From the NCBI GenBank assembly GCA_965202585.1, contig OZ241826.1:114948001-115012000 (forward strand): a stretch of DNA of 64,000 nt, given 5' to 3'. The notes beneath the pieces were generated by a model. The model was not told where the DNA came from, did no database searches, and saw only the letters and a list, made by a program, of their open reading frames with translations. Source of the DNA: Thalia democratica (Eukaryota). How positions within the stretch are numbered: the stretch's first letter is position 1; each line of letters opens with the position of its first letter. This document shows, piece by piece, positions 7,991-62,043 of the stretch. The translations under genes were made by a program, and so were the position numbers.

Positions 7991-8084
7991 TACAGTTTTT
8001 GTTTTAGTAAACAATATGTAATTTTTACTTTGTTTAACACAGGTTGCAGCATTTAGTGTAGTATTCGCCAAGTATTCGATGTGA

Positions 8085-14408: not shown

Positions 14409-16275
14409 ATGTCAGATGAATGCTACAAAACTGATGTTAAAAAAATTAAATTTGAAGAAAACAATAAAAAATTAACACGTATGGGTGTAACTTATGAACA
14501 TCCAGTTGTTGATTGCTTTACTACTTTATGCAAACAATTTTCTACAAAAAATTTAGATGATAGAAGTCTACAAATTTTCAATGTTTTTAACAACAAAAGT
14601 AAATTTAGTATCATTTATGTTGAAACCGAGTTTATAACTTTAAAATAATTTGAAACAGTTTTAACATCATGTTTATTGTATGTTTTATTAACTTAACGAA
14701 GTGTTTTGACAATGTTTTAAATAAAATAAAATAAAAATGTTTGTTAAAATAAAAAAAATTTAAAAGTGAATTATTTCATTGTTATCAACAATAATTAGCA
14801 ACTATATGTAATTTATCAACTCACTTATACATGTGATTCTTATTTAGATGCACTGTACTTGAAAAAAGATGAAATAGTTTTAGCTATGAAAATAAATAAG
14901 CTTCTGCAAAAGGAAGATGCAAACGTGAAGATAAGTAAAATCATCCGAGATAAATTAGCTGTCAAAAACGTTCTTACTTTTTACAGCTTAGCTAAACTTT
15001 ACAACCTAGCTACTATTTCTGAGTCATCATTGCTTTATATTGAGTGTTGTTTTCCAATGATTGTTGAAACTCAAACATTTTTACACTTAAACTTTAATCT
15101 TGTTGCAAAAATACTTAACAGTTCTGAAATAAATATTCACTCGGAAGTTGAAGTATTTAATGCAGTTATTAGTTGGTTGGAATACAATAGTGAACAACGT
15201 AGCAAATATGCAAAACAATTGTTATTAAAAGTACGATTTTCTTTAATGTCAGAACACGCATTAAAGTATATTTCAAACTGTCATTCAACATTCAATAAAA
15301 AAGGGGAATGTGTTGAACTGATAAAAAAAACTTCAGCTAATAAAAAAAAATATCTTTCAAAATAACTTAAGCAGCTTATATACTAATAGGTATTGTAGTC
15401 AAGATCAATTTAAAATATTAGTTTGTGGTGGTAATAAACCTAAGTCTAGTACAGATTGTACAGTTGCAAGTGTAAAACAGATTGATGAAAGGAATTTACA
15501 CAAAATTAAAAGACTTTCCTAAATGAAAGAAGATCGAACGAGTTTTGAAGCTGTTTTTTTAAAAGGAGAAATTTACGTATTTGGTGGTACTAAAAGTTTA
15601 GTAAACTATTTTGTCGTAGATAGTGTAGAAAAATATTCCTTTTCTACCAATAAATGGACTACACTAACTAAAATGTTTGATAAACGTCTGCACTTTTGTG
15701 CTTGTTCATTTATAGATAAAGTATTTATTTTAGGAGGTTTTTTATCTACTAGCAAAATGGATGTTTTTACAACTAAATCTTGTTTAGAATTCAATATTAA
15801 ACATAACAGTTTTAGAGAAGTTTGTGAAATGAATGTATCAAGAAGATGTGCAGCTTGTGCTGTTTTTCAAGGAAATATTGTTGTTTCTGGTGGAATTGAT
15901 ATTTACAATTATAAGTTGAGCTCAGTAGAATCATATGATGTATTTGGTGATAAATGGTTATCAATGCCTAATATGATAAATCGTAATGATAATCACAGTT
16001 TAATTCCTGTAAAAGATAAATTGTTTGTTATTGGATATAAAACAGACACTTGTGAAGTTTTTGACAACACTTGTAAGAAATCTGTTGCTGTTAAGAATCC
16101 ATCAAGTATTAAATGAAATAAATGTGTGTCAATAGGTAACAAAATTTTAGCTTTTCAACAATACAGTTCCTCAGTAATTTGTTATGATGTTGATAAAGAT
16201 GAATGGTCTGAAGAATCATGTCAAGTAACAAAATATATTCAACATTTTGCTTGTGCGAAGTTACCTTGGTATTAA
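14409..16275 (+). pseudogene. Gene B: two-exon BACK-Kelch pseudogene (exon 1 14409-14598, intron 14599-14847, exon 2 14848-16275)
   Basis: Donor AAAA|GTAAAT and acceptor TTTAG|AT (phase 1) sit at the same positions as in the paralogues. BACK motif SEVEVFNAVISWL; kelch motifs GEIYVFGG, KVFILGG, IVVSGG. Lesions: +1 frameshift in the A8/A9 runs at 15323-15350, in-frame TAA at 15520-15522, in-frame TGA at 16114-16116. After the TGA the frame continues to ...ACAKLPWY-TAA (16273-16275). Confidence 0.9.
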
Positions 16276-16554
16276 ATATTTAGTTTAATGTGCAAATTAG
16301 TTTGATGATTGTGAATTGAGTTTGTGCATTGCAAATAAAAGGGTTTTATTAGAATGTTGTGTTTATTTTATTTAACCACCGAAAGTTATTTAGTCTTAAA
16401 TACAATTTGATTATATATTAGATATGTTAAATAAAAATTAATTCTTAGGAATTTTTAAGTTTAACTAGCTGTTTTTATTAAACCCATTTTCAATATTTAA
16501 AATTACTTTTATTTATTTTTATAAAGCGGGTTAGCAAACTCTGGCTTTCGAAAC

Positions 16555-19984: not shown

Positions 19985-20355
19985 TAGTATATGTCAATTG
20001 AACAACACCCGTCAACCCGCACTCTAACAATACCTAGGTTTATTTTATTTAAGGTTGTCGGTATACTGTAGTTGCATATGTCAATTAAACAACACCCGTC
20101 ACACTGATCACTTACAATGCCTTAGTATATTTCATTTAAGGTTTTCGGTATTCTGTAGTTGCATTATCAATTTAACAACACCCGTCAACCTGATAACTTA
20201 CAATACTTAGGTGTATTTTATTTATAGTTGTCAGTATTCTGTAATTACTTATGTTAATTGAACAACACCTGTCACCCTAATCACTTACAATACCTAGAAA
20301 TATTTTATTTAAAGTTTTCGGTATTCTGTAGTTGCATATGTCATATGAACAACAA
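19985..20355. repeat. 87-bp minisatellite, ~4.3 copies (older diverged units at ~19760-19980)
   Basis: AACAACACC(C/T)GTC at 20001, 20088, 20174 and 20261, with a partial copy at 20348. Confidence 0.92.
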
Positions 20356-24490: not shown

Positions 24491-27440
24491 TTAATACCAA
24501 GGTAACTTTGCAAAGGAAAAGCCTTTAAAATATTTTGTTACTTCACATTGTTCTTCAGACCATTTATCCTTGTCAACATCATAACAAATTAATTTTGTTT
24601 TGCAATTTTGAAGTATTACAATTTTATTTCCAATAGACGAAGCTTTCTTCAAATAAATATGACTATTAGGTGGCTTCAGGGCAATAAACTTATTACAAAC
24701 GTTGTCAAAAACTTCACAATTGCTAATTCCATGATCAATAACAAACAGTTTATCTTTTACATCAACTAAATTGTGACCATAATGATGTCTTATCATATTA
24801 GGCAGTGATGACTATTTATCACCAAACACATCATATGATTCTACTGAGTTCAAACTAATATTATTATTATCTATTCCACCAGAAACCACAATACTTTCTT
24901 GAAAGATTGTACAAGCTGCATACGATCTAGCTACATTCATTCCAGCAATTTCTTTAAAATTGTTATGTTTTGTATTGAATTCTAAACAGGACTTAGTTGT
25001 TACTATATTGTCATAATTATCTTCTATATGGAAACCACCGAATATTAATATTTTATCCATAAATGCACAAGAACAAATGCGATGACGTTCATAAACCATA
25101 CTAGATACTACAGTCCATGTGTTAGTAGTTGGTGAATATTTTTCAACCGAATTTACAAAATTATCAGCACTATCATAACCACCAAAAATATAAACTTCTC
25201 CTTTTAAACAAACAGCTTCTAAGTATTCTCTACATTGATTCATTGGAGCAAGATCTTTTACGCAGTTCATGTTACTTCTATCAATTTGTTTTACTTTACT
25301 TACAACTTCAACCAATCTATCATCATAACCACCACAAATTAACAAATTATATTTGTTTTGGTTACAATATCTACTTGTGTAAGTAATATTTGAATTATTT
25401 ATCAAGTAGTTGTTGTTTGCTAGTACTTCTTCTAATATGTTATCATTATCATAAATTTCAGTAGTTGAAGAAATTTTATCTTTAATATATTTCAAAGCAT
25501 GTTCTGACAATAAAGGAAGTCGGACTTTTAGTAACAATTGTTTTGCATGTTTGCGACGTTGTTCAATGTTGAACTTAAACCAATTATTTGCTGCATTAAA
25601 TACTTCAACTTCTGAGTGAATACCCAATTCAGAACTTGAAAGTATTTTTGCAACAAAACTGAAGTCTAAATGCAAAAAGTTTTGAGTTTCAACTACCATC
25701 GGAAAACATCGTTCTATATAATTTAAAGACCAGTCAGAAATAGTAGCTAGGTTGTAACATTTAGCTAAACAGTAAAATACGACAACATTTTTAAATTTTA
25801 ACTTGTCTTGAAAGATTTTGCTGATCTTTATGATTTTCTTTTCTTTTTGAAAAAGCTTATTTATTTTCAAAGCTAAAACGATTTCATATTCTTTCATATT
25901 TGGTGTATCTAAAAAATTAATTATGTATAAATATCATATTTGTAAATTTGCTTAGAATAACTGACAGATTTTTAGAACTAGAAATCTACGTAATTGATAA
26001 CAATATAATGTTTTATTACAAAATGCTGTTATTTTATATATAATAAAAAGTAAAAATTTTTGTAATTATTCTTAAAAAATAAAAAAAGTATATATTACAG
26101 TACTACTTTTTTAAATTTAACATTTTAAGATATGGTAGTCTACTAGCAGTTCTCTGATAGGAGATTTGGCTTAGCGCTGTTTATAGATGTTTAGTAAAAT
26201 TTTTAACTCTAAATTCAAAAACCGGCAAGCATATAAATCTGGCCCTTTAAAACAAAATTTGAAACTAAAATTTGATATAGTTTGGTTTAAATTATTTCAG
26301 ATAACAATGCACTTTAATTAAGTAAGGTATAAAACCACAATTTTTTTTAAAAACATAGAAATATCCTACTTGTCTTTTTAACACCTTTGTAGTATTTATT
26401 AAATACAAAGTTTATCAAATTAATTGTTTTAGTTATAAATCTTATTTTATAGAACTTAATTTTGTAACAGTTTCTTTATATCCACTATATTTTGAGATAT
26501 AATAAGACGAAGTCGAAGAATTTAATGCAATTCTTAGATAAATGCAAAACGAGACTTTTTTGTTAGAAGAATATCTTTTCCTACACTTTAAACATTACTT
26601 TTATAAATATTAAGTAAATAATAAACATTACTATTGTACCAAAAAATAAAGTTGTCTTTTTTAATTTGAAAAGACATTTTTCAAGATGTGCTTTTCTATT
26701 TTTGGGTCATAATTTTTCTAGATCATTACAATAAAATTTTTTTGATATGAAAATATCTCCTGAATACTTAAGTTTGAAAAACTATGGGTAAGATTTTTAT
26801 TTTGTATTTTTTGAATTTCTGATTAGTTTTACTGTAAAAATGTTACAGTAAATTTGATTAAATTGGTAACATTTAAATAAAATGACTATATCTTAGGCAT
26901 TGTATAATTTTTTATAATTGAATTAATTATCTTTAGTTCACCTTTATAATTAACATAAAAGTCAATATTAACATTGAAAAATATCACTAACCCCTAATAT
27001 GCTCTTGGTATCTATTCATTTAAATTTTCTTAAAATAGTTTACAGTTTTCAAATTTTTCAAAACTTTTTAATAAAATCTAATATTAATACTAAGTCTTTT
27101 CTTTTAAATTTTTAATCCTTTCTAAGCATAAAAGTTATGCTTTAACTAAAAAATTAAGTCTATACATAATTTAAATTAATAGATATTAATTAAAACTAAA
27201 TATAACAAATAAATCAAACTAAAATATTTTTTAAATTTTATTACCTGTACTTTCAAAAGTGTAGTAAGCTCGTACACTTTTATCATCTAATTGTTTTGTA
27301 AAATACTTCATGCATTTGTTTTTAAAACAATCAACTACTGATTTTCTACAAGTTGCACTAACACTTGCTAATTTTTTATGGTTGTTATCAATTATTATTC
27401 TTTTGACACCAATTTGATCCATATTAGTTTCATCTGACAT
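24491..27440 (-). pseudogene. Gene C: two-exon BACK-Kelch gene with one premature stop (exon 1 27440-27245, intron 27244-25909, exon 2 25908-24491)
   Basis: Donor ACAG|GTAAT, acceptor TTTTAG|AT, phase 1. ORFs 24812-25897 and 24491-24796 are in the same frame, separated only by TAG at 24814-24812 where the paralogues have TGG (FGDKW). Would be 537 aa if intact; 430 aa as truncated. Confidence 0.85.
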
Positions 27441-30400
27441 GACTTAATAATGGTTTTTAATCTTATTATAAAGAAACCTGAATATACTAGTTTGAATATA
27501 TTTAGCTATTTCAATAGTAATTTACTTATTTTACAGTTTTAAAATAAAAAAAATCTAGTTATCTCAAAATAATATTTATTTAATATAAATTTAACTGAAT
27601 TATTGCTTTTTTTATTTAAAAAAAAAATAATGTATAAATTCAGAGTTTTTTAGCACTTGAAAAATTATTATGTAAGAACACTTTAAAAATTTTATTTATT
27701 ATAAAATCACATTAATTAAAAATATTTTGTTAGTAAACATGAATAAAACTGTGAATTTCTAGTGTGTAATTTTTTTAATAGTTTTAAAGTCTTAAATTAA
27801 ACAATAGAAATAAGAAAATATTCAACCACACTACAAAATTGATAATATTTATTTAATTGAGCTTATACTTTTGTTTTGTAATTCACAGATACCTAACACT
27901 ACAAGTAATAGACATCATTAAAAAAACTACAATATTGTTTTAATAAAGACGACTAATATGTTTAAAGGTGTTAAGGCAGGGAGTGATATAAGATTAAAAA
28001 TAAAGAATTAAAACTTATATTTATAGAATAGTACTACAGTAATAAAGATAAACTTATCAAAACAAAACAAAAATAAAATTAAGAAAAAACACTTAAAATA
28101 ATTAAAACTATATAAAATAAAGTTAGCCAACCTGTGTTTTGATAAAAAGAACAAATGAGCCTAAATCAAACTAAGTAGAGTATGTAAAAACTATTTGAAT
28201 ATTTTTTACATTAAACTTACCACTTAAATTTCACAAGAAGTAAAAAGAATCAAATAGTTTAAGTTTGTTTTTTAAACTTTATAAAGAATATTTTACATAG
28301 TTATAATAACCCTATACTTTTGTCTAAAATACTGGCCTGAGATTAAAACTAGATTGAGTTCATTTTACAAAACCTAAATAGTTCCGAGTCATGCAGAGAT
28401 TTTCTTTATTTATCTATGTTTGGTATTTTTTTTTTAGTTGTCCTGAGTGTTTGAATACTCTTTGCAAACTATTATGAATTTTTATTATAAAAAAAAATAT
28501 TTTGGGTCAGCCCGAAATATATACAAAAATCCTTAGTTATTTTGAGTGTGTGACATCCCTTATATTTTAATTTTATAAATATAAATTTAAGTTTTATAAT
28601 TTCCGGATACATAACGACATCTTTTATAGTAATAACTTTTAAAAATATTTCGTTGTTTTTACTAAGAAAACATTTAAAGCTTAATAAGTGCAAATAAAGT
28701 TAGTTTTCTTAAGTTTATCATTTCAATCTAGATTGAAATAAAATCTGATTGTATATTCATGACAAAGACTGTAACTAACATAATTTTACTTTCTATTTTT
28801 ATACTAGAGTGACAACTTATTTTTACAATAATTTTCCAGATTTTTTGAAACATAATATATTTTTATTTCTTTAAAAAAAAAATTTAAACATAAATAAAAA
28901 ATTTTTAAAATTTACTTAACTACTAAAATGATACTCTAAATGTGTGTGAGTTTAAGTTTTACTTAATATAATTTTAATTAAGAGTATTTTTTATTATTAT
29001 TAATATAATGGCCTCTTTATTGCTAAGAATAGTTAAAGTTATAGAAATAAAACATGTAAGTTTTACGGATTTTACATAATTTTGATAACCAAAGTTTTAT
29101 CTTTTTATTTATTTCCAAAATTACTAAATTTCTCATCTTTTTAAGTTGAAATTTATATACCATAGTTTTTTAGTTAAATTGCCATCTTAAATTTCTAATT
29201 CTAAAGTTAGTTATAACTTTTGCTTTGACTTTTTTTACCAATAACTAAGTACAATGGATAGATTTTATTTAAATTTTAGATATTAAAATTAAAACATATT
29301 GATTCACAGGTCAGAATCACATGATTAAATTGTTTAAGTAATTTTTTTGCCTGCTTAGTATTTTGAACTTAATAATTTTCCCTTTCTGTCTTTAAATGTT
29401 AAAATTTTATTTTATGAGTATTAGCAAAACATCATGTCACCGAGAGATTTTTTTACATAAAAAAACATATAATTTATTTTTGATTACTTTAATGTTAATT
29501 AGCAAGGTAGAGTTAATCATAAATAAATCTACTTAAAAATTTATAAGGGTGGCCACTGCTTTTTTTAAATACTCGTTTTTTCGTTTAGTTTAAAATTAAA
29601 AACTGTGTGAAGTAGTGTTCAACTAAATTAAGATACTGTAAAGCTACTTTTAATTTAGTTTTCAATAAAAGAAATAGAAATTGATATTGACAAAAAATTT
29701 TATTTTATATCTAATTTTTTAGTGTCAAATCAAAGTTTTAGTACTTAATATAAGGGTTGCCACTCTTTAAGTCAAAAAAAATTTTCCCTAAATAACAAAA
29801 AACTTCCCTGAGTTTAAATCCTTAAATTTCTTATAATATTATAAAAAATAGAATTTATTTTTTAAGAATATTAAAGAACTAGCTGCAAGACCAAAAAAAC
29901 TTTTAAATAAGCACTCAAAAAAATTAAATCTAAATTTTTTGAACATAATATTAAAGCTGAATTAACTAAATTTCTTTCTAGATCTAGAAAAAAATTTCCT
30001 GATATTTAAAAAAAAATTTTTAAATTTCCCTGAAATTTTTATAAAAATCCAAAACTGCTCTGAGTTTCCCTTTGTGAAAAAAAGAGAATCGAAATTCCCT
30101 GAGTTTCCCTGAATTCCTTAAGTGTTTGGCAACCCTGTAATATGTAAAAATAGTCTAAAACTCCAGGTTTTTAAAATCCATATTATTCATACATTATTTG
30201 AAAAATAACTCAAATTACAGGTTTTTTAGCCAAATCCAGGTTTTGTTGTTTTGTGGAAACTCTGACTCTTGTATACTTAAGAATAAGACTGATGTTTTAC
30301 AAACATTATGAATTGAAAGTACATTTGAAAATATTTATATTACTTTATAATCAAAATATACTAAAATCTTTGATCTTCAGCAACTTAACATAATTATATA

Positions 30401-31830
30401 AATATTTTTTTCTATAAAAAAAAAAGTTTTATAGTTAACCCTTTGTGACAGTGTTCTTTTACTGAGCAAAACTAGCTTAAAACAGCAAAGTGATTAAGTT
30501 TGTTATAACTAAATGAATAAAAGGTCTTTTTTGTTGTAAATACTTTTTATTATAAACAGGAATTCTACTGTTTTAGTCAAATATACTGTCCTGAATGCAA
30601 TTTATTTGATTGAGTTATCCTGAAATTTTTGAAATCCTGATAAAATGTTAAATATTTTTAAATTTCACTAAAGACTTTTCTTTAAAAAATTGGGTAGTGA
30701 ATAATAAATATTTTAATTAATTTAACTAAATCTAAATCAAAATTTAAATTGCTGTTTTAAGCAAAAAAACTGTCTAAGTGATCATTTATTTGCTTGAGTC
30801 ATCCTATATTTTTGAACTCAAAGAAAAAATAAAAAACTTTTAAAATACACCAAAAATCAACTTCTTCAATAAAATTGGGTATAAAAAAAAGATGTTTCAA
30901 TTAATACAACCAAATATCATTCAAAGTCTAAAAAAAGGCCTAGGATTTTCAAACGCTCAAAACGATTCTCAGTTTTTCAATAAAGAACATAACTATCTTG
31001 AGCCTGCCTGACTTTAAAAATCAAATTTCAATTATCCTGAGTAATACTGAGTCATCCTGATGTTTTAAAAATAGTTTGAGTAGTACTGAGTATCCTTAGT
31101 TAGTGGCAACCCTGTATAAATATTTTTTGACATTATACTAAAATTGATAATTTGTGTCACTATGTGATTATATACTAATTTTGTTTTTATAAAATTGGGT
31201 TGACTGATGTTAATAGGGTCCTTAAAAAAGCTTTGAAAAATCTCTGAAGTGAACAATATTGCAGGATTCAAACCCAGTGGTTTGCAAATATACAATAAAA
31301 AACCTGGTTTTTATCCTGTTACAGTGGTTTCTCCAACAATTTTTGAAAAAAATATTATAAAGGGTTTTAATTTTATAACAAAATAATTTTAAATATCATT
31401 TTATCTGGTTAAAAATGACATGCTCTGTTAATTTGTAGTATTTTTTTTTATTTATGATTACACAAATTCATATTGATATAAAACTTGAAAGTTTAAAAAA
31501 CAAATATAAAAAAGTTATATTGTTAAAATAACTATCTTTGTTTAAAATTCTAACTATATAAGCTTTTGAAAAGTACAGAACTATATTAACTAATACAAGA
31601 AAATGGCAAACTTGCAGTAACAACTTTGTACTCATTAATATTATTTAAAATAACTAATACACTTTTTTTTAATCTAATAAACAATATGTAAATTTTACTT
31701 TGTTTAATACTTTTTGATTTTCCAATACTACTATGGTATGAGATGTGGCTATTGAACTAAAGTGGCTTTTTTTAAGCAATGAGTGTTGAAAGCAATAAAT
31801 TCAAGTCAATTAACAACATTTTATTTAATT
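25930..31830. repeat. Left arm of a large inverted repeat (gene C intron, exon 1 and upstream)
   Basis: Reverse complement of ~37195-42780. Examples: 30781-30900 vs 38041-38160 essentially identical; the 73-aa ORFs at 28472-28693 and 40251-40472 mirror each other. Confidence 0.92.
29752..30137. mobile_element. 386-bp MITE with (C/A)AGGGTTGCCA TIRs and a 6-bp TSD (TAATAT), nested in an older MITE
   Basis: TIRs AAGGGTTGCCA / TGGCAACCCTG flanked by TAATAT on both sides. The paralogous empty site is at ~5301-5320 (AGTACTTAACATGTAAAA). Confidence 0.85.
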
Positions 31831-32114
31831 GAAAGTTTTTAACTATAACTATAGAAAAATAATCTCTAATTTTATATTAAAAAAATACAATTTACGCTAA
31901 AACTGAACAAAATTTCAATTATAAATTACAACAGTATGTTCGACAAATAATACACAATTGTTTTCAAAATGTTTTAATACTGGGGAATCTACACACAAAA
32001 AATTATGGTTTTCAATTAAACATCTAGATTCTTTTGAGCATTTATTTTCTGTCCGCATCGTAAAAAATTACTGGAAATCTGTTATTTTGAAATGGGTCCG
32101 ATTGTAATGCTGAT

Positions 32115-32320
32115 GTGTTTCACGGAATATTTGCTGAGTCAGCAAACTTTTCTAATTTTCTTATTTTTTTATCACATATATATTTGCCACCATACCTAAA
32201 TATATCATAAATTAATCAAAGATTAAACTTTATAATATTAATTACAAAGAATGAGAAAATATTGATATTTATGATAAACAATTTTTATTTTGCTGACTCA
32301 GCAAATACTATGTGAAACAC
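32115..32320. mobile_element. ~206-bp inverted-repeat (MITE-like) element whose ends contain perfect TGCTGA(G/C)TCAGCA motifs
   Basis: ~30-bp inverted ends GTGTTTCAC...ATTTGCTGAGTCAGCAAA / TTTGCTGACTCAGCAAAT...GTGAAACAC with an AT-rich interior. No clear TSD. Confidence 0.65.
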
Positions 32321-32940
32321 TTCCACGTTTTAATAAAACTCTTTTGAAACATTACTTTTCTGTATTCAATCGAAAAAGCTGAATTTAAATATAAAAAGGT
32401 GGGTTGTGGTTTAAGAGCGATCAATTTTTTTGTAAAACTGACGAAAAATTCAAAACCGTTTGTTTTAACACCAGTATCAAATAATTTATCTATCACAACA
32501 ATTAAATTGTGGTTACTATAACATTTTATCATATCAGGGATTTTTAAAAATTTATTAGTAAATTTATCTGTACAATTCTACCATTTTTAGTTGGTCTTTA
32601 TTATTATTTCCACCACTTTAACCAACAAAATTTCTTTGAAAAACTACACAAGCTCAATTAATTGTTGCTACATTCATTCAATCTTTTTATTTAAAGTTGT
32701 TAGATTTTATTTTGAACTCTAAACAGGAATTAGTTGTTGAATTGACATCATTATGATAAAAACCTTCAAAAACAAATATTTTATACCTAAACGTACAATC
32801 GCAAAAATTTAAACGATTATTAATCTGCTATAATATTCCAAATGTTAGTAGAATATGAATATTTTTTAACAGTTTTTGTCAACTTTTTAAATAACTTTAT
32901 GAAACATTTTAAACGTAAGTATTAAATATTATATTTCTAA
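32321..32940 (-). pseudogene. Highly decayed kelch-repeat fossil (approximately blades 2-5)
   Basis: Minus-strand translation across stops and frameshifts gives TVKKYSYSTNIW, RLNFCDCTF.YKIFVFEG, TTNSCLEF, ACVVFQ.N and MIKCYSNHNLIVV.DKLF. These are collinear with SVEKYS.STNKW, FCACAFMDK, TTNSCL.F, ACAVFQGN and HNLV.VKDKLF in the intact genes. Confidence 0.75.
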
Positions 32941-33989: not shown

Positions 33990-34105
33990 TGTCGTTTAAT
34001 AAACAATATAAAATATTTCTGGTAGTTTCTCATAGTTTTGATAAAGATAAATGGACAAAGTATCATTTGAAGATAAATAGAAATTTTGTGATTTTTCTTG
34101 TGTAA
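33990..34105 (+). pseudogene. Possible fossil of a kelch C-terminus
   Basis: VVSHSFDKDKWTKYHLKINRNF weakly resembles ICYDVDKDKWSEEQCEVTKYF. The match is short and could be chance. Confidence 0.3.
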
Positions 34106-47920: not shown

Positions 47921-50339
47921 ATTTGTTATTTCAGATTTTTTTAAAGAAGCAAAAACAATATGACAAAAAAAATACTGTGCTCCCTACTTCTATATAAGCA
48001 AATATAAATTTCAATGATATTAATAAAATTAACTTATATCAGAAAGTGAATTTATTTACTTTTCTATTACCTTAAAATTACTTTTGTTTATGGTGTTTTT
48101 TTATAAACAACAAAAGTGTTTAAATATTAAACTATTTTTACAATTATACATAATAAACAAATTAAATAACTTTTAATAAACAAAAATATTGTCAGTCATG
48201 TTAATTTAAAATTATATAGAATTATTACAAAACACAATTTTTTTTTTAAGTATTGTAAACATTATTATCAATCAAATACTACGTTTTACTATAAAATTAT
48301 TTTTTCAAAAATAATTTCGACAATGTTTTTTATATTTAGATATTAATCATTATATATTTGAATATTATAGTATACATATTCGCTATTATAATATTTAAAA
48401 AACGAATTAAATTTTGAATTACTGTAATTAAATTAATATTTTAAGTTGTAAATTGTTTGTTTATGTACTATAACTTAAACTTCAAACAAAATACTAATGT
48501 TAAGACTTTTTTTAACTAAAATTTTACCAAGTATTTAAGAATTTTTTTTTGCCTTTTATTGTTTTAATATGAGGTCGGATGTTTTTATTTTAATTTGCAG
48601 TTATGTTTTAAAAAACAATTATTTCGAAAACTTTTAAGACTTCTAAATAACTATATATAAAAAATTAATAAAGAAATAACATATAAAAGATATTTTTATT
48701 TACTTAGTTAAATGAATTTAGACCTGATTAAAGTTAGAGCGAACTAACTTAGAAAATATTAAGCAAAAAGCTTTATACTGATTTTAATAATGCTACATTT
48801 GTAAATAAAAACCTATTGTAAATTTTTAGAAAAAATTTTGTTATTTAAAATTTTGAAATTTAAATTTTTATATTAAATTTAGCGTCTTATGTAATAATAA
48901 TCATTTGTTTGATACATAATACTTTAACTATTATTTACTAAATAAAGGAATTTATACGTTTTTAGTTTATAAACAACATTTATTTTCTGTTTTAATCACA
49001 ACGATAAAAAAAAAATTTATAAATAGAATCAATATTAAACAAAGTTTTAAGCTGTTTCAATAAAATAACTAACTACAATTTCTCTACTTTTATTTAATTA
49101 GTAAAAATGTTACTAAATAAGCTACTTTTTATTAGACTTAAAGAATATACAAATTGAATGTTTAAAGTAAGGTCATCAAAGTTTTTTATTCAAAATAATA
49201 AAGTTCAGCCATTTGTAGTGTATAAGTAAGTCTATTAAGTTTTTATAACTTGTATTAATAATTTTAATATAATTTCCATGGCAATGTTTCTTCTAATATA
49301 TTAGATTTTATAAGTATGCTTTAATGTAATTATGCAATATAACTATGTTTATTGTTCTAGTTAAATTTGAAAATACAAGTTAGTATATGATATTAAAATT
49401 AATAACTAAGTAATTCATAAAGTATGTTTTGTATCAAACAAACGTATGAACTTAAATTCACAAAAAAAATAATACAATTTTATCTACTAAGATAAATATT
49501 TACTATTTAATTTTATTTAAAGCCTATTTGCAATCTGATTTATTTAAAAAATTAACAAATTAACTTTAATATTTTGTAACATCCTAAAGCTATAATTAAA
49601 TATGTTTTCTGGATACTATGTTTTTATTAAATTGTTTGCTGTGCAATGTTAAACTAAGGCATCATAACCTGAGCTACTTAAACAATACACACAATAAAAA
49701 TAATTAAATAATAACATTTATATAACAATTGACTGTAAAAAGCCGTATAGTTCCCATTAATAATTTCATAAATCATAAATAAATCAAATACCCATCTTTA
49801 ATACACTGGACACCTCAATCAAAGTTTAACCAATCAATAAATATATGATGAATGAGAAATGTTACAACGACTGCATATCAACCGAGTAAAACTCACAGAC
49901 TCAGTTTTGTTAACATCTTATCTTAAAGAGGGTGACCGAAAATTGTGTATTTTTATTATAAACAACAAAATAATGTCGAGTCAGACTGAGTCTTAAAATC
50001 AAAATATTATGAGTTATTTAAAGTGTGTGACTGCCCTCTCCTGAACTTTGTATATTTTGTTTTCAACTTAAGGATCTATAAATACAATTTTTATTCTAAT
50101 AAATTATTTTAATTGGTACATTTTACTTACTAATTAAAAAATTAGAAGCCTAAAAACATTAATAGTTTTATATTAATTAACATTGATAAAAAAACACATT
50201 TGTCAAAAATAATAATGAAAATTTTTCATTCAACATTTTTTTCTTAAGCACCGTTTTATATAATTCGATTCAAACATATAGAGCGCTTCAAAATTTAATT
50301 TGAATTCCAGGGGTTTCCAAGATTCTAGGTTTTGTGGTT

Positions 50340-51520
50340 AACCTGATTTCTATTTGTAAATGGAAAGGTGAGACTAATGTTTTTTGAACATAATAAAATA
50401 TAAATATTATAGTTAAAAAAATTATATTTTCTTATAGTGTAAACTAGATACAACGTTTAATACTAAATATTTAAAGTAAATGCATAGATATTTTATTTAA
50501 AAGATCAATTGAGTACTAAACCCTTTAAAAAAGTAATTTTTTAAGAAAAATAAAGTCAAAACAGTCAAAGTAAATAAGTTAAATAAAAAATATTATAATA
50601 AGAATACTTATTATTACAAAGTTGTTACTATCTAATCAAAAAAGTGTCCTGAAAGATATTTTATTGACTAGAGTCATTCTGAAATTTTTAAAATCACTTA
50701 AACCAAGTCTCCAGCAAAATTGGTTTTAAATTAAGAAACTATTCCAACTAATTCAAGAAAACCTTATTTAAATTCTAGAAAACAATTGGCCTAAGATTTT
50801 TTTAAATACTTATCTATTTAATATCCTTGGTGTTAAATACAAAATCATAAATATCTTGAGTCAGCCTGGGTTTAAAAAACACTTTAAAAAATTATCCTAA
50901 TTAATACTGAGTAAGTGTACTGAGTAATACTGAGATTTTCCAAAAAGTTGAAAAAATACTTTGAGTAATACTGAGTACCCTGAGTATGTGGTAACTCTTT
51001 ATAAAAGTTTTTCACATAAATACCACTTATTAAATACCATTTATAAAAATTTTATGCGTTGTTTCAATTAAACTTATGTGGACTGATTTAAAGTTGGTTC
51101 CAATATGGGCTTTGAAGTCTCTTAGAGTTGAACAATACTCGAGGTGGTTGACAAATATACAAAAAAAAAATTAACCTTTATAAGTCTATACTGTTACATG
51201 CTGTTTATGAGAATAATTTATATAAAGATTTTCTTTATTTTAAAATAAAAATAATTTTGAAAACCAACTTTTTTTGAATTAATAACTATATGATCTATTA
51301 AATTGTGGCAAATAAGTTTCTAATTTATAATACCATAGTTTCAATATTATGAAATATTTAAGTATTTTTAAACTAATATTAAATAAAAACTGGTCATAAT
51401 TTTTAATATTTTAACTTCATTCAAACTTCTAATTTTAGTTAGTAATTTTTAAACAACAAAACATTTTTAACTAATAAAAAGGAGTGCCAGACTTGTAGTA
51501 AAATTTTTATAATTGTTAAT
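50340..51520. repeat. Orphan partial upstream module, oriented opposite to the gene E module
   Basis: 50370 matches 5467; 50640-50690 matches 5770-5810; 50990 matches 6090; 51305 matches 7760. It is inverted relative to ~53280-54450. Confidence 0.7.
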
Positions 51521-52370
51521 GTAATTCAAATGATTTACAATTTTATATTAACAGAAAAAAATATTGAAAGCAATATTTTGTATCTAAAATTTGTTTTTTT
51601 AAATACTTATATAGTTCATATTTAACAAGTTAGTGTTGTCTACAAACTTTTAAAATTACCGTAGCAGAAACAAAACCAGTTTTTAGTATTGAATTTTTTT
51701 AAAGTTTAAAGTAATCATGATCCAGTTGTTGAAGTTTGAAAAATTCATTGTTGATAAAACAAAGGGTTCTGAAGTTATTGACAGTTAGTGCAAAAAACTG
51801 ATTGCTTTAAATTTAACCCACTAGCATTTAAAAAAATATATTTCGATGAAAAACACATTCTAAAAATTTTAAAATGTCTGGTTAAAACATGAAGGTTTTT
51901 CACCTAATATTTGCTGAGTCATCAAAAAAATAATTTTGATAAATGTCAATTATTTTATCAACTATTAATATTTTTAGTATTTAAAACTTTATTTTTTCAT
52001 AAACTTATAATATATATTCGGATTAGGTAAGTAATAGATATAGAATAATAAAGAAAAACAATAAAATTATAAAGTTTTGCTAATTCAGCAAATATTAAGG
52101 GAAAATATACACATTGTAATCGAACTCATTTTAAAATAACATATTACCATTAGTTTGTTACGATGTAGACAAAAATAAAAGGTCAAAAGAATCAAGATGT
52201 TTAATTGAAAATCATAAATTTTATGTGTATAGATTCCCCAGAATTGAAACATAAAAAAACAAATTTTGTTTTATTTGCCGGACATACTAGTAGTAATATA
52301 AGTGAAGATTAATTATAATACCGTATAATTGTATGATGTATATACTAGAAAAGTGTCATCAATCCCCGAT

Positions 52371-52550: not shown

Positions 52551-52565
52551 TGTTGAAGCGTTGAG

Positions 52566-52777: not shown

Positions 52778-54340
52778 ATCCACATTATAATCGGACCGGA
52801 CCCATTTCAAAATAACAAATTTCCAGTAACTTGTTATTCTGTAGACAAAAAAGTTGGTCAAAATAATCTTGATGTATTATAGAAAATCATATTTTTTTGT
52901 GTGTAGATTCCCCAGTATTAAAACATTTTTATATCAACTGCGTATTATTTGTTGGGCATAGTGTTGTAGTTTATAGTTGAAATACTTCTTCTATTTTTAG
53001 AATGATTTTTTTAATACATTTTTAGAATATTTTTTTTTTGTTTTAGATAATAATTTCAAGATAAATAAACATAAACGTTGTTAATTCACATGAGTTTGTT
53101 TTGACTACACACGATTAAAAAAATAAAAACCATTTTACTTCAGTAGCCACAGCTCATACTATAGTAGTACTTGGAATAAAAATATTTTATACAAAGTAAA
53201 GTTTACATATTCTCTATTTAAATAAAAAATGTGTATTAGTTACTTTAAATAATATTATTGAATATAAAGTTTTAACTAAAAGTTTGCCACTCTCTTATAT
53301 TAATATATAAGTTTTTTTTACACTTTTAAACGTTTAAGTTTGAATAAAGATAATAAATTCAAATTATAACCATTTTATTTTTTTTTTCGTTTTGAAAAAT
53401 ATAGTTTTTTATCAATACTGAACTTATAAAATCATTAGTGGGAAAAATCTGCCACAACTTAATGGAGCATGTCATTTTTAAATTATAAAAATATTCAAAA
53501 TTAATTTTGCTTTAAATTTTTTTTTTTCTTTAGTTGTAGCAGAAACCTTTGTAACAGTATAAAAAGCAGATTTTTTTTCACTATTTGCCAACCACTGGGT
53601 TTGTATTTTGAACATGTTCACTTTAGAGATTTTTGAAAGCACTTAATAGGACTTATTTAACATCAGGCCACACAAATTTGATTCAAACAAAGTTAGTATA
53701 TAAATACTAGTGACAAAAATTATTAGTTTTAGTATTAATGTCAAAAATATTTGTACAGGGTTGCCACACACTCAGGATACTCCGTATTACTCAAACTATT
53801 TTTAAAATTTTGAAAATATCAGGATGACTCTGTATAACAGAGGAGAATTTAAATTTGATTTTTAAAGTTAGGCAGGCTCAAGATAGTTATGTTCTTCATT
53901 GAAAAACTGAGAACTGTTTTAAGATTTTAAAAATCACAGGCCATTTTGTTAATTTTGAATTAGATTTAGATGAATTAATTAAAATATTTTTTATTCAATA
54001 CCCAATTTATTAAATAAGTTGTTTTTTGGTGAATTTTAAATGTTTTTAGTTTTCTTAATATTTCTAAAATTTCAGGATGACTCAATCAATTAAATGGCAT
54101 TCAGGACAGTATATTTCACTAAAAAGGTAGAATCTCTGTTATAATAATAAGTATTTACAAAAAAAAGACCTTTCATTCATTTATTTAAAGAAAACTTATT
54201 TACTTTGACTGTTTTAAGCTAATTTAGCATAGTAAAAAAACACTGCGACAAAGGGTTAACTATAAAACTGATGTTTTTATAGAAAAAACCAATTATACAA
54301 TTATGTTAAGTCACTGAAGATCAAATGTTTTAGGAAATTT

Positions 54341-54862
54341 TGATTATAAAGAAATATAAATGTTTTGAAATATATTTTCAAATTATAATGTTTGTAAAAC
54401 ATCAGTCTCATTCTTCAGTATAGAAGGATAAGTCAGGGTGTCCAAACAACAAAACCTAGAATTGGTAAAAAACCTGTAGTTTAAGAAATTTTTCAAATAA
54501 AGTTTGAATAATATTGATTTTAAAAATCTATTTTAAACTAATTTTATATATTACAGGGTTGCCACACACTCAGGGAATTCAGGGAAACTAAGGGAATTTT
54601 GATTATAAAGAAATATAAATGTTTCCAAATATATTTTCAATTTATAACGTTTGTAAAACATCAGTCTCATTCTTCAGTATAAAAGGATAAGTCAGGGTGT
54701 CCAAACAACAAAACCTAGAATTGGCTAAAAGAACTGTAATTTGAGAAATTTTTCAAATAAAGTTTGAATAATATGGATTTTAAAAATCTAGAGTTTTAAA
54801 CTATTTTTGCATATTACAGGGTTGCCACACACTAAGGGAACTCAGGGAAATTGAGGGAATTT
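54341..54862. repeat. 259-bp direct tandem duplication
   Basis: TGATTATAAAGAAATATAAATG at 54341 and 54600. Both copies contain CAGGGTGTCCAAAC and CAGGGTTGCCACAC. Confidence 0.92.
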
Positions 54863-55205
54863 TGACTCTCTTCTTTTAACTCAGGGAAACTCATGGCAGT
54901 TTTAGATTTTTCTAAAAACTTCAGGAAAATTTTAAGATTTTTTAAAAAATCTCAGATAAACTTTTTTCTAGATCTTTTATAAAGTTTAGTTAGTTCAGCT
55001 TTAATATTATGTTCAATAAAAATAGATTTTTTTTTTAAGTGCTTATTTAGAAACTTTATAGCCTTGCAGCTAGTTCTTCAATATTCTTAGAATAAAAATT
55101 GTATTTAGTAATAAATTAAAAGAATTATAAGGGTTTGAATAAACTAAAGGAAGCTTAAGGTTACTCAGGGAAAATTCTTTTTCTACTAAAAGAAGGACAA
55201 CCCTT
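54817..55205. mobile_element. Copy of the same MITE insertion in the gene E module
   Basis: CAGGGTTGCCA...GGACAACCCTT, flanked by ATATTA/ATACTA. Nested in host element 54693-55408. Confidence 0.8.
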
Positions 55206-58200
55206 ATACTAAGTACTAAAACTTTGGTTTGACACAAAAAAATATGATATAAAATAAAATTTCTTGTCAATATCGATTTCATTTATAAAAAACTACATTC
55301 AAAGTAGCTTTACAGTATTTTAATTTGTTGAACACAACTTCACACAGTTTTTAATTTTAAACTAAATAAACCCAAAAACGAGTATTTAAAAAATCAGTGG
55401 CCACCCTGATAAATTTTTAAGAAGGTTTATTCATGTTTATTTCTATCATATTAGTTAAAATTAAAGTAAACAAAAGTAAATTCTATCTTTTTTTACTCAA
55501 AAAAATCTCTTGGTGACATGTTGTTTGGATAACACTCAAAAAATAAGATTTTAACATTTAAAAATACAAAGGGAAAATTATTGAGCTCAAAACCCAACCA
55601 ACCAACAAAATTAATTTAACAATCCAATCATGTGATCTTGACCTGTGAATCAATATGTTTTGACCTTAAAATTTAAATACTATTAAAATCTATCCATGGT
55701 ACTAAATTATTGGTAAATAATATCAAAGCAAAAGTTATATTAGGTTTTTAATGTGGCTATTATACTTAAAACTATATTATTGAATATAAAATTCACGTTG
55801 CAAAAAACAATCTTGTAGTTTTTGAAAAAATAAAAAAGATAAAACTTTGAATGTTAAAATTATGTTAAATCTGGAAATTTTTCATGTTTTATTTCTATAA
55901 CTTTAACTTTACTTTGCAATGAAAAGACCATTATATCAATAATAATCAAAAACAATTCTTAATTAATTTTATATTGTTTTAAATTTAACTCACACACATT
56001 TAGAGTAATATTTAGTAGTTATATAAATTTTAAAATATTTGTTACTAATATTTATTTTTTATTAAAAGAAATAAGAAATGTGTTTCAATAACCTAGAAAA
56101 TTATTCTAAAAATAGATTGTCACTCTGCTACAAAATAGAAAGCAAAAATTATGTTAGTCACAGTCTTCGTCATGAATATACAACTTAATTCCTAAACTAA
56201 GATCTTTTTATTATATTGTTATTTAAAACGATAAACAAAAGTTATCTGTAAGTTTAAGCTAAGGACCTTGTCTACTAAAAACCTTTAAGTTATCGAGTAG
56301 TACACACATACTTAAAGTAAATAATTTAAGTATCATTACATTCAAGAAGTTTTCAGTTATTTAAACTGACAGTTAAAATTAAAGCCATTAGAAAAGATAA
56401 ATGTGTCAAAAAGCTAACTTAAGCTCTTTTACAACAGCTTGATAATGAGTTTGCAAAATCCAAGTAACTTTTTATAATATACATAATTTTTCCTTGACTT
56501 TTAAAATTTAGTGAAACTATCTTATCTTGCAAGGGATATTGTAAGTTTTGTAAAAAATATATAGATGTGTATAATGGGATAATGTTTTTGAAACTTATAT
56601 CTATCCTTTATTTTTTTATAAAGAATGTTTATATTTTTTACAAATAGTTTCTAAGTGAAGTACAAACTTTCAAATATCAGAAAAAGTCTTTAGTGACTAA
56701 AACAATTATTTTTTTTTATAAAGCAGCCCTATACTAAATTACACATTATTCAAAAATTTCTACTGCTTTTTAAGAGAATTTTTAATTTTAACTGTTAAAA
56801 AACAACTATTGCTAGTTGCAGGGTTGCTTTGTTGCCATACACCATAACTCAGTCTATCTGACCTTTCTATTAAATTTAAAGTTAGTTTAAAACTATCTAT
56901 TTTATGTATTACTATTAATATTTGGTAACCTTTAGTTTCTTATGCATAATAAGGAGTAATTTATGTTAAGTTTTTTTGTTTAATAATATTTTTAAACTTT
57001 TTATTAAGACAGGGTGACTTAGACTAACTGGCTTTAGTTCAAGCTCTATTTTCTTGTATTCAAAGAATGACACCTTGTTTAAGTTTTTTACATAAGTTTA
57101 TTACAGCCAGCAGTGTCACTTTTATTTTTATTGGGTCTAGAATTTAATTTTATTAATTTAAATACTTTATAAATACAAGTAATTTTTTTATTGTTTATTT
57201 TGTTTTAAGCATTTAAAGAAAACCCTACAATTTGTATTAAATGATCTAGTTATAAACAAGAAAACCTATAAAAAGTTAATAACATCATCTTTAGATAAAC
57301 TTATGTTGCCAAATAAATTGAAATTGTATTTAATGAATTTTTTGATTAAAAAATTAAATTTTATCTTAGTGGTTAATGTAGCATTTACACTAAAAAAAGT
57401 TTACCCCTACCAGCTAAGTACTTGAAATTAGAAAAAATGTATTTGACCGAAATAATGTAAAAGAAGTGTTTAAGGCAATTGTGTTGACTGCACTTTTTTT
57501 ATTTTTCAGTTTTATTTCAATCTTGCTTAAAATTATAAACTTAAGAAAACTAACTTTATTGGCACTCATTAAGCTTTAAGTTTTTTTTTAGTAAGAACAA
57601 TGAATTATTTTAATAAGTTATTAGAATAAAATATGTTTTTATGTATCCGGAAATTATAAAACTTAAATTTATATGTATAAAATTATAACATAAGGGTTGT
57701 CACACACTCAAAATAACTAAGGATATTTGTATATATTTCGGACTGACCCAAGATGTTAATTTTATAATAAAAATTCATATCAGTTTGCAAAGAGTATTCA
57801 AACATTCAGGATAATTATATAAATAAATACCATAGATAGATAAATAAAGAAAATCTACGCATGACTCGGAACTATTTAGGTTTTCTAAAATGAACTCAAT
57901 CTAGTTTTATTCTCAGGCCAGTATTTTAGACATAAATTTAGGGTTATTATAACTATCTAAAATATTCTTTATAAAGTTTAAAAAACAAACTAAAAATATT
58001 TGGTCATTTCACTTCTTGAAAAAATTTAGTGTTAAGTTTAATGTAACAAATATTCAAATAGTTTTCACATACTCTACTTAGTTTGATTCAAGTTCATTTG
58101 TTCTTTTTATCAAAACACAGGTTGGCTAACTTTATTATATATAGTTTTTTCAAGTATTTTTTTCTTTATTTTATTTTCATTATTGTTTTCATATACTTTT

Positions 58201-58871: not shown

Positions 58872-61800
58872 ATGTCAAGTGAATGTAATATGGACCACAT
58901 TGATGTTAAAAGAATAAAGCTTGATGAAAACCATCAACAATTAGCAAGTGTTGGTGCAACTTGTAGAAATTCAGTAGTTGATTGTTTTCAAAACAAATGC
59001 ATGCAGTTTTATTCAAAACAATTAGATGATAAAAGTGTACGAGCTTTTAATACTTTTAACAATACAGGTAAGATAATTCAAACAATATTTAACATTGACC
59101 ATTTTTTTATAACTAGTTAATATTAGCTGTATTAAAAGAAATTTAAAAAAAATTTTAACATTAAATATTTTTGACATATTAGTTTTAATTTGTTAGTTAT
59201 AGCAAAATTTTAATCCTTAAAAATTACTTATAAAAAATAAGACTTAGTACTGTTATTTGATATTAACAAAATATATTTTAGAATTTTCAAAACTTTAAAC
59301 TCCATTAAGAAAACTTAAGCAAATATATTAAAAAAAAAGAAATTAAGAGCATAATAGAGCTTAGAGATATTTTTTAACATTAGTATTGATTTTAAATAAA
59401 TTGTAAAGGTAAACTATAAGTAATTAATTCAATTAATAAATATTATGATAAACTTGGGACTTGTTTTTTTTTTTTAATTGTTCCAATATTATCTAATTTA
59501 CTAGAATATTTTTACAGTTAAACTATACAGAAATCCAAAAACTCAAAAAAAATACATTTTTTTTTAACGTTTAATACTAAAGTATTCAGGAAACAATTCT
59601 ATAATTTTGAAAACCTTTTTGTAAAGATTGAGATAAATTATCACTCAAAAGAGGAATATACATATAAAAATGTCTTCTTAAATTTATTTAGATATTTTTA
59701 AGATTTTTAAGATTTTTCTTTATTTTTGTAGAATAGTAGTGTTTGGTATTTATCTAAGGTTTTAGAAAGATTGTTTTAACTGTCGAAGAAGATATATTTA
59801 TAACTATATAATCTTTTTCTGCTTTTTTAACTCATTATTTATCAAAGTATTTTATTGAACTCTTCTATTTTGTCCTCTAATATGTTAAAATTATTGATAT
59901 TCAAGAGACTCTTAAAAAGTTAAGTTGTTTAAAATAAGTATAATAAATAAAACTAGTTGTTTTTTATGTAACTATGTTTTTAGTAGAATTTAAAAAATGT
60001 GTTAAAATAATGCAAAATAATATAAAATTTAACAAAGTTTAGTTTAAAAAGTCCTTTTTGTCGATTCCATATAAAAAACCACTTATTTATAGTTGTTTTT
60101 TTGCAATTAACGATAACTACCAAGTCTAGAAACTACGACTTAGATTAATACACAGCTAATTTTTAAAACAGCAATAAAGATATTTCCATCCTAATAAAAA
60201 ATGTTGCAGATTTAAAATCTTTTGTATTTTGAAGACATTGTTATCTTATTTTCATATTAAACCCAAGAATATCAAACTTGATTTCAAAATATGTTGTAGA
60301 GTGCCAGAATTACATTCTTGTGGGTTTTTCCGTTTAGGGTCTGGATTTTATTAAATTTTATAAACAATTCCAAGCAAAATCTCCTATCAGTGATCTGCTT
60401 GTAGACTACCTCTATCTTACAATTTTTAATTAAAAAGAGTAATATTATGATTTATATTTAATTTATTAACAACAATTAAAAAATTCGTGTTGCAATAATT
60501 GATATAGAATAATATTGCGATAATATTTTTATTGATAATGCAGGTTTCTAGTTCTTAATAAGTATTAACTATTTTGAGCATTTTTATAATTATAATACAA
60601 GTATATTTTTTAGATGTATCAAATCTGAAAGAAGATGAAATCGTGTTAGCATTAAAAATAAACAAGCTTCTGCAAAGAAAAAATACAATTACGAAGATCA
60701 GCAAAATCCTTCAAGACAAATTAACAATTAAAAATGTTGTCGCATTTTATTGTTTAGCTAAATGTTACAACCTAGCTACTATTTCAAAGTCATCATTGCA
60801 ATATATAGAACGTTGTTTTCCGATGGTTGTTGAAACTCAAAACTTTTTACATTTAGACCTCAGTCTTGTTGCAAAAATACTTGCAAGTTCTGAATTGGAT
60901 ATTCACTCAGAAGTTGAAGTATTTAACGCAGCAATTAATTGGTTGAAATACAACAGTGAACAACGTAGCAAATATGCAAAACAATTGTTACTAAAAGTTC
61001 GATTTTCTTTGGTGTCAGAACATGCATTAAAACATGTTTTAGATTCTAGCTCTCTATCAAATGAAATTCAGGAGTATAACAAAGAATTAAAAGAAATTTG
61101 TTTAAACCAGCTAAATAAAAAGACAGGTAGTTGTTATACAAACAGATATTGTAGTCAAAACTTGTTTAAGTTCTTAATTTGTGGTGGTTCGAATACTCAC
61201 TCTTTAATATCTGCTGGTTTTATTAGTAAAAATAATGACGCAGTAAATACGGTAATTCAAGTAGATGGAAGTGACTTAAACAAAGCGAAAGTTCTTTCAC
61301 CAATGAAATTTGAGAGAGAAGATTTTGAAGCTGTTTGTTTAAAAGGAGAAGTTTACGTATTTGGTGGTCGCGGTAAGTGTGGTACTAAAATAATGTCTGT
61401 TGAAAAATATTCACCTTCTAATAATACTTGGAGTGAAGTTGCTGATTCGTTCGATAATCGTGAAAACTTTCGTGCTTGTGCATTTATGGATAAAATATAT
61501 ATTGTTGCTGGATATTTCCGTCATAACTTTGAAGCAACTAACTCTTGTTTACAATTTGATACAAAAATCAAAAGATGGAAAAAAGTTGCTAAAATAAAAG
61601 AAAAAAGAAGTGATTTAGCGTGTGTAGTTTTTCAAGGAAATATTGTAGTTTCCGGTGGAATGGATAATTATGGTAATTATTTGAACTCAGTAGAATCATA
61701 TGATGTATTTGGTGATAAATGGTCACTAATGCCATATACGATAAATAACAATGTTTATCATAATCTAGTTGTTGTTGAAGATAAACTATTTGTTATTGGT

Positions 61801-62043
61801 TGTGGATTTAACAATTGTGAAGTTTTTGACAACAACTGTAAGAAGTTTATAGCTTTGAAATCACACAACAGTATTATTTTTTTAAACAAGGCCGTGTCTA
61901 TAGGAAACCAAATTGCAATGTTTCAAAATAACAGTTCATCAATAATATTTTATGATGTTGAAAAAGATGAATGGTCTAAAGAATCATTTGAATTCACAAA
62001 ACATCTTCAACAATTCGCTTGTGCAAAGTTACCTTGGTATTAA
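58872..62043 (+). CDS. Gene E: intact BACK-Kelch (KLHL-like) protein, ~541 aa spliced (exon 1 58872-59067, intron 59068-60613, exon 2 60614-62043)
   Basis: Donor ACAG|GTAAGA and acceptor TTTAG|AT join in frame (196+1430 nt). BACK plus six kelch-like blades, ending in the family C-terminus CAKLPWY. Confidence 0.92.

Follow-up and report, generated by a model that had tools for sequence, protein, structure and literature searches.

Thalia democratica, a pelagic tunicate, carries a cluster of genes encoding BACK and Kelch domains on contig OZ241826.1 of assembly GCA_965202585.1, within a stretch of 64,000 nucleotides (positions 114,948,001 to 115,012,000 of the forward strand) that was analysed as a whole and is referred to here as the window. 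GC content is 20–28% throughout the window and 22% overall, and its few long open reading frames (ORFs) are the Kelch genes. Searches by tblastn with two of the copies (D and E) as queries identified five copies, A to E, of a two-exon gene, comprising a 65-codon N-terminal exon, a phase-1 intron and a single exon for a BACK domain and a six-blade Kelch propeller. An earlier note on this DNA had proposed that these genes belong to a birth-and-death family under diversifying selection for ligand specificity. The explanation that we judge the best overall, and probably correct, is that they represent a lineage-specific BACK-Kelch family without a BTB domain, which evolves by birth-and-death with conversion of its 5' parts, and in which the B-C and D-A loops of the propeller are essentially unconstrained and change at close to the neutral rate.

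Under this explanation the window would contain a local cluster of a very large two-exon family, each member joining a short N-terminal peptide to a BACK domain and a six-blade propeller of the KLHL type. Copies would arise through tandem and inverted duplication and would then frequently become pseudogenes. Gene conversion or recombination would repeatedly homogenise and reshuffle the 5' module, consisting of the upstream region, exon 1, the intron and BACK, and the Kelch halves would persist as old, deeply diverged lineages. Purifying selection would hold the scaffold of the propeller. The ligand face, made up in KEAP1 of the B-C and D-A loops, would be essentially unconstrained and would drift at close to the neutral rate, so that the copies would present many different binding surfaces.

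Gene structure and the variable face of the propeller

The tblastn matches comprised five first exons, second exons of nearly full length in four copies (B, C, D and E, with E-values from 1e-139 to 1e-166) and one decayed Kelch fragment. Copy A is represented by exon 1 on the reverse strand (706–900, matched in two frames), the remaining gene lying beyond the window start. Copy B, on the forward strand, has exon 1 at 14409–14598 with a GT donor at 14599, and exon 2, a pseudogene with BACK and six Kelch blades, at 14848–16275. Copy C lies on the reverse strand, with exon 1 at 27245–27440 (65 codons plus one base, with a GT donor) and exon 2, encoding BACK and Kelch with one in-frame TAG, at 24491–25908. 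On the forward strand, copy D has exon 1 at 41585–41780 (again 65 codons plus one base, with a phase-1 GT donor at 41781) and an exon 2 at 42795–44230 that retains an intact ORF for BACK and the six-blade Kelch domain with an altered tail, and copy E has exon 1 at 58872–59067 and an intact exon 2 with the canonical KLPWY end at 60614–62043. Introns range from 249 nucleotides in B to 1546 in E. In all copies the GT donor falls one base into a codon and the TTTAG/AT acceptor two bases before the next codon, so that exon 1 and exon 2 would join in frame through a phase-1 intron.

Exon 2 of B, C, D and E matched the Pfam families BACK (PF07707, E-values 1e-22 to 1e-24) and Kelch_1 (E-values down to 1e-35). 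The description of these as four near-complete paralogues in the earlier note is thereby borne out, and the scaffold motifs that it listed, GE(I/V)Y(V/I)FGG, SVE.YS, T.SCL.F, F..NIVVSGG and SVESYDVF.DK, are all present. Pfam searches of exon 1, of the N-terminus of exon 2 and of the whole ORFs found no BTB domain (PF00651) even at E<=10, nor was one found in the N-termini of eight longer relatives; in copy B, moreover, the intron is only 249 nucleotides long, so there is no space for a hidden BTB exon.

Exon 1 itself has no match to a Pfam family. A match of copy E exon 1 (58872–59063) to Orthopox_A49R was rejected as probably due to chance, being at E = 0.012 and 16 bits against a cut-off of 25.8, and occurring in none of the other copies; also rejected was the idea that exon 1 is a second copy of the N-terminal helices, or 3-box, of exon 2, for which profile-profile comparison gave a probability of 0.1% and Pfam no match. 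Between D and E, exon 1 is more conserved than its flanks (88% versus approximately 70%), and the most divergent first exon is that of copy B, with 44% amino-acid identity to D. The window's type of exon 1 was not found upstream of relatives from Tara Oceans contigs, which have a different, Lys-rich N-terminal ORF 0.5–0.75 kb upstream of exon 2; N-terminal exons therefore differ between subfamilies. The Lys-rich ORF follows the pattern MSKLV.K.K.N..K.FEE.NEKS... (at positions 8690, 2416, 2572 and 752 of our contigs L001, L005, L008 and L009 respectively).

An AlphaFold2 model of D exon 2, built from an alignment with 101 family members, reached a predicted local distance difference test (pLDDT) score of 91.7 and comprises BACK helices followed by six four-stranded blades, with blade 1 completed by a C-terminal strand (strand assignment by DSSP). 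In structure it most resembles the Kelch domains of KEAP1, KLHL17 and KLHL12 (template modelling score 0.87 by target). The KEAP1 propeller has the same topology, including the C-terminal strand that closes blade 1, and its D-A and B-C loops make ligand contacts and form the NRF2-binding pocket (PMC12314335).

The loops directly after GG are the B-C loops. The earlier note had reported that these loops differ among copies in both length and sequence, and all eight of the loop strings that it quoted were found verbatim; copy E additionally has a 10-residue insertion in the B-C loop of blade 1. Column entropy over 101 sequences peaks in the B-C loops and, within each D-A loop, at the two positions that follow its conserved Arg, with means of 3.0 bits (B-C) and 2.4 bits (D-A) versus 1.4 in the strands and 1.9 in the A-B and C-D turns. 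When sites were ranked on 89 relatives that were kept out of every codon test, all of the top 35 fell in B-C or D-A loops, which account for 106 of the 276 analysed sites (hypergeometric p = 5e-17). Mapped on the predicted propeller and the KEAP1 pocket, the variable loops are those through which KEAP1 contacts its ligands (PMC12314335), and the proposal that they lie on the substrate-binding face of KLHL-type proteins holds across the family.

Searches of public sequencing runs for RNA from the locus gave solely runs whose kind is not stated. Read contigs from these runs, approximately 150–230 nucleotides long and aligned to copy E, cover introns as well as exons and so look like DNA. In exon 1, BACK and the cores of the blades, the summed depth of these public read contigs, which is not equivalent to copy number, is approximately 10–50 times that in the variable segments, namely the linker and the loops of blade 1 and blade 3.

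Counting family members, as the earlier note had suggested, yielded 247 matches from Tara Oceans contigs, all of them BACK-Kelch proteins without BTB, and, at E<=1e-30 in a HMMER search of the whole library, 659 representatives of 50%-identity clusters, a number that includes ordinary Kelch proteins. Among the 150 best HMMER matches (all E<=1e-70), most are family-sized (243–554 amino acids) and about nine are giant multi-Kelch proteins; the giants include proteins of 2,000–7,000 amino acids with 12–20 Kelch-like stretches (P0121, P0140, P0152, P0159 and P0162), an unrelated architecture. The relatives come solely from Tara Oceans marine metagenome contigs, with a base composition similar to that of the window; a scan of JGI metagenomes for further DNA copies gave no confirmed relative. 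Judged from these matches, the family is very large, with hundreds of members. Neither Kelch nor BTB is mentioned in the Salpa genome paper or in a 2026 comparative paper on tunicates, and we found no paper in the library searched that joins tunicates, kelch and gene family expansion; judged from the genome papers on salps and tunicates that we could search, the family appears to be undescribed.

Tests of selection on the loops

Pairs of copies from the window are too diverged and too mosaic to be used alone for tests of selection, and the codon analyses drew on the DNA of 12 relatives, among which five pairs or trios are closer to one another (72–81% amino-acid identity). Nei-Gojobori counts (NG86), pooled over three close pairs with synonymous divergence (dS) of 0.1–0.26, gave ratios of replacement to silent rates (dN/dS, or omega) of 0.52 for strands, 0.44 for loops of the other face and 0.92 for loops of the top face. 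The B-C loops reached 1.12 (51 replacements and 11 silent changes; Fisher p = 0.86 against 1), and pairwise values for loops lay between 0.8 and 1.1. These figures are not our headline estimates because AT bias inflates NG86 approximately two-fold relative to maximum likelihood: for the Kelch domain as a whole, omega is 0.33 under a one-ratio codon model (GY94+F3x4, M0) versus 0.66 by NG86. The same inflation weakens the case that NG86 values near 1 would make for diversifying selection.

Preferred estimates come from a codon likelihood on a fixed tree, with a grid of omega classes and with branch lengths fixed except for a global scale. In simulations this estimator returned 0.99 +/- 0.07 for neutral sites and no false signal in 40 runs. 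Across fits to the full tree and to recent branches only, omega was 0.20–0.35 for strands, 0.2–0.4 for loops of the other face, 0.4–0.7 for D-A loops and 0.6–0.8 for B-C loops (upper confidence limits 1.0–1.2 on recent branches). The earlier note had taken loop dN/dS at or below 1, together with divergence no greater than in neutral flanks outside conversion tracts, as speaking against diversifying selection; both loop classes fall below 1, and by this yardstick adaptive change is not demonstrated.

A class of sites with omega above 1 improved the likelihood when synonymous rates were held equal, twice the log-likelihood difference (2dlnL) on the one-dimensional omega grid amounting to 15.5 for the full tree and to 9.4 when recent branches alone were used; with synonymous rates allowed to vary, the signal fell to 4.1 and 2.1 respectively. 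Run on the codon alignment of 14 sequences, this counterpart of the site models that the earlier note had proposed leaves a 2dlnL of only 2–4 once synonymous-rate variation is admitted. We also defined 24 contact-like positions from KEAP1 contacts, namely GG+1, the position that precedes the C strand and the pair that follows the D-A Arg. This set was picked after the variability profile had been seen, which counts against the support it lends to diversifying selection and, because the choice was post hoc, a second set of hypervariable sites was re-derived from the 89 independent relatives. With the gene-wide synonymous rate, omega was 1.35–1.75 at the contact-like positions. With a synonymous rate taken from those codons themselves or from the 106 loop codons, both subsets gave values of 1.0–1.35 with intervals spanning 1; for the hypervariable sites and the loop-wide rate, omega was 1.0–1.2 (confidence interval 0.8–1.5), which is indistinguishable from neutrality. 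Remaining loop residues gave 0.3–0.6. The excess of omega over 1 consequently hinges on whether the loop or the gene-wide synonymous rate is applied, the former being approximately 1.2–1.6 times the latter (scale 1.0–1.3 versus 0.8–0.9), possibly through alignment noise or indel-associated mutation. At approximately 25–35 positions of the surface, evolution proceeds at the neutral rate or slightly faster, and the rest of the protein is clearly constrained.

Several points weigh against the explanation that we prefer. The codon set is small, with 12 of its 14 sequences coming from unidentified Tara Oceans organisms, and the tree is long, at 8 substitutions per codon, with indels in the loop alignments. 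The cross-validated hypervariable sites have an omega of 1.5 with the gene-wide synonymous rate (2dlnL 12–32 over both subsets), a value that 40 simulated neutral data sets never reached, and the average may conceal some positive selection. In addition, expression of the copies and splicing of exon 1 to exon 2 are things that we infer from the DNA, and the role of the proteins as variable-specificity intracellular binding modules is one that we infer from the fold alone.

The strongest rival holds that diversifying selection acts on the loops and favours new ligand specificities, in the manner of receptors for host defence or conflict, and that selection opposes homogenisation of the Kelch half. 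We regard this as conceivable but rather doubtful. In its favour stand the restriction of variation to a binding face of the KEAP1 type, the likelihood gain with equal synonymous rates, the values above 1 at contact-like and hypervariable sites, and the observation that the 18 best-supported differences separating copy E from the public read contigs comprise 14 replacements and 4 silent changes. Against it are the collapse of that gain when synonymous rates vary, the neutral values obtained with a loop-derived synonymous rate and the class-level estimates below 1; there is also no tie of the family to infection, stress or expression. Adaptive diversification of the loops is suggested rather than shown.

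Mosaic history and turnover of the copies

The earlier note had found further support for rapid loop change in its impression that the non-coding flanks of the copies are much more similar than their coding sequences. This is true of the 5' side of particular pairs, the regions upstream of C and D being 95–100% identical, but fails elsewhere. The 3' flanks are 50–59% identical, which in AT-rich DNA is effectively unalignable, versus 72–76% for exon 2; between D and E, intron (70–75%) and 3' flank (68%) are no closer than exon 2 (64–78%); and the intron of copy B, at approximately 52% identity to the other introns, is unrelated to them.

Copies C and D form an inverted repeat with arms of approximately 4 kb, 95% identical overall, the left arm lying upstream of C (27533–31510, reverse strand) and the right arm upstream of D (37423–41416, forward strand). 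Between them a 5.9-kb spacer (31511–37422) holds the decayed Kelch fragment, which covers blades 2–5 on the reverse strand (32344–32915; 33–43% identity to D and E by tblastn, E-value approximately 2e-18). Identity declines from 99–100% in the inner arms, through 90–98% nearer the genes and 85–92% across exon 1 and the intron, to 72–76% from approximately 42885, just inside exon 2, a gradient that suggests repeated conversion and not a single duplication. The 5' region of copy A is also approximately 88% identical to those of C and D. In addition, the block that lies 5' of the Kelch genes recurs as a dispersed repeat of 65–80% identity, present at 3155–8040, 11085–12109, 28749–31700, 37197–40195, 50322–51615 and 53117–56645, including sites with no adjacent Kelch gene.

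A four-way sliding window of identity places the relevant transitions in D more precisely. D resembles C up to approximately 42810 (87–94% just upstream of the change), and then resembles B over 42814 to approximately 43170 of the forward strand, a tract of its BACK region that is 91–97% identical to B; over this same region C and E form a pair at 83–93%. From the linker onward there is no close pair among B, C, D and E, and the Kelch half of D has no close partner. We read the segments of these copies as having different histories, with a 5' module that appears to have been converted or recombined and Kelch halves that appear to be old. That the conversion tracts end before the Kelch half is what would be expected if homogenisation there were selected against, and so favours diversifying selection. 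That similar flanks contrast with diverged coding sequence, however, does not show faster coding change, because the mosaic of conversion and recombination tracts explains the step in identity; the argument that the earlier note built on this contrast for accelerated loop change therefore does not stand.

Damage to the copies is widespread. Direct comparison with D shows a 1-nucleotide deletion near 752 that shifts the frame of copy A exon 1. Exon 2 of copy B has one frameshift near 15340–15365, within runs of A8/A9, and two in-frame stops (TAA at 15520–15522 and TGA at 16114–16116), and copy C has a single in-frame TAG at 24812–24814, in place of the conserved Trp of the DKW motif, a position at which relatives have Trp. 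The C-terminal tail of the family, K-[LIV]-P-x-[YF], is KLPWY in B, C and E and is kept in most of 120 relatives. Although copy D has an open reading frame, its tail (44201–44230) is frameshifted, a 1-nucleotide deletion near 44204–44209 turning the conserved KLPWY into KSFGINRIG, and E is the only fully canonical copy in the window. With three of the five copies (A, B and C) damaged, a decayed fragment between C and D, and hundreds of members elsewhere, turnover by birth-and-death is supported, as the earlier note had claimed.

Several Tara relatives show a frame change or a stop within the first 30–40 codons of exon 2 (P0036, at 3100–3200 of contig L005; P0034, in L008; P0005, in L006) and may be damaged or may use another acceptor.

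Such damage might also mean that the amplification is mostly non-functional, the copies being decaying passengers of segmental or repeat-driven duplication and loop variability the first sign of their decay. Besides the three damaged copies and the altered tail of D, this alternative draws support from the repeat-rich surroundings with dispersed copies of the upstream block, from the report that repeats exceed 80% of salp genomes (PMC10686999), and from exon 1, in which NG86 omega of approximately 1.0–1.2, over few sites, reveals no clear codon-level constraint. We nevertheless consider it unlikely. Uninterrupted ORFs of approximately 475 codons are not expected by chance in DNA of 22% GC, the omega values for strands and for the one-ratio model indicate sustained purifying selection, and exon 2 is far more conserved than the 3' flanks. 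Moreover, the Kelch lineage of D is old and has been retained, since D shares a lineage-specific 5-residue insertion with a Tara relative of 61% identity. It is very improbable that an assembly or alignment artefact, with near-identical repeats collapsed or joined into chimeras, created the mosaic and the lesions. In favour of an artefact, the B frameshift falls in homopolymers, a typical site of long-read error, and the reference disagrees at many sites with public contigs from the same or a closely related organism. Against it, the stops in B and C arose by substitution; the mosaic has abrupt boundaries, which separate copies that differ by 10–25% instead of being near-identical; and the same gene structure and loop pattern occur in independent Tara contigs.

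Outside the genes, the window contains two arrays of 165–167-nucleotide tandem repeats (8090–8512 and 9734–10431), which are mutually inverted and approximately 85–90% identical and whose short ORFs look spurious, and an 87-nucleotide tandem repeat at 19989–20354 with 4.2 copies.

Relation to other adaptor families and significance

The best matches of the window family in both sequence and fold are the KLHL and KBTBD adaptors of CUL3, such as KEAP1, KLHL3, KLHL12, KLHL17 and KBTBD2, in which BACK likewise precedes a Kelch propeller of six blades that a C-terminal strand closes. KLHL and KBTBD proteins fall into roughly 40–50 conserved orthologue groups. Unlike them, the window family has no detectable BTB domain, carrying in its place a 65-residue N-terminal exon that matches no family, and is characterised by two-exon genes, hundreds of paralogues and a binding face that is unconstrained and not conserved. 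With the main CUL3-binding domain missing, these proteins may or may not still feed into a cullin-RING ubiquitin ligase; in KLHL proteins the BACK 3-box alone forms a minor part of the CUL3 interface.

The MATH-BTB and F-box expansions of nematodes are likewise lineage-specific and clustered, evolve by birth-and-death and vary most in their substrate-binding domain, and a role in immunity or conflict has been proposed for them. In these nematode families, work by Thomas on nematode and plant ubiquitin-ligase adapters (Genome Res, 2006) reportedly found site-specific positive selection and retention of the cullin-binding domain. In the window family, by contrast, omega above 1 is not robust and BTB is missing. 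The F-box superfamily of plants, which includes Kelch-repeat F-box proteins, has been described in terms of 'genomic drift': its families are very large and unstable and rich in lineage-specific members and pseudogenes, and neutral gain and loss can account for much of their diversity (Hua et al. 2011, PMC3030570). This is the same evolutionary mode as that of the window family, although in a different kingdom, with a different recruitment domain (F-box with SKP1) and with propeller loops that were not analysed alike. The BTB-Kelch and Kelch-like immune-evasion proteins of poxviruses also combine BACK and Kelch and are among the language-model neighbours of the window family. They are viral, and BTB is listed for one of the two neighbouring Atlas clusters but not for the other, a difference that may only reflect the Atlas displaying no more than three families; there is no sign of kinship with the window family beyond the shared fold.

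Large, unstable families resembling ligase adapters and bearing variable surfaces occur in nematodes, plants and fish; one view sees them as innate-immune repertoires, another as the outcome of neutral genomic drift. The window family would add a case from the chordates, within the sister group of vertebrates, that uses a KLHL Kelch propeller without BTB. At present the window family is a well-documented family expansion, for which an adaptive or immune reading is plausible but unproven. A more far-reaching version of that reading, which we rate as improbable although worth stating, is that pelagic tunicates maintain in their germline a repertoire of hundreds of BTB-less BACK-Kelch proteins, with adaptively diversified faces, 5' modules of N-terminal exon and BACK swapped by conversion onto old Kelch lineages to give new combinations, and signalling by a route other than canonical BTB-CUL3 docking. 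If this were true, the targets might be, for example, viruses, selfish elements or markers of self and non-self within colonial chains. The family offers a natural experiment in which a scaffold is constrained, one face is fully released and the 5' module is shuffled by conversion; adaptive change in that face or a new link to ubiquitin ligases, if either were true, would bear on the diversity of intracellular recognition in invertebrate chordates.

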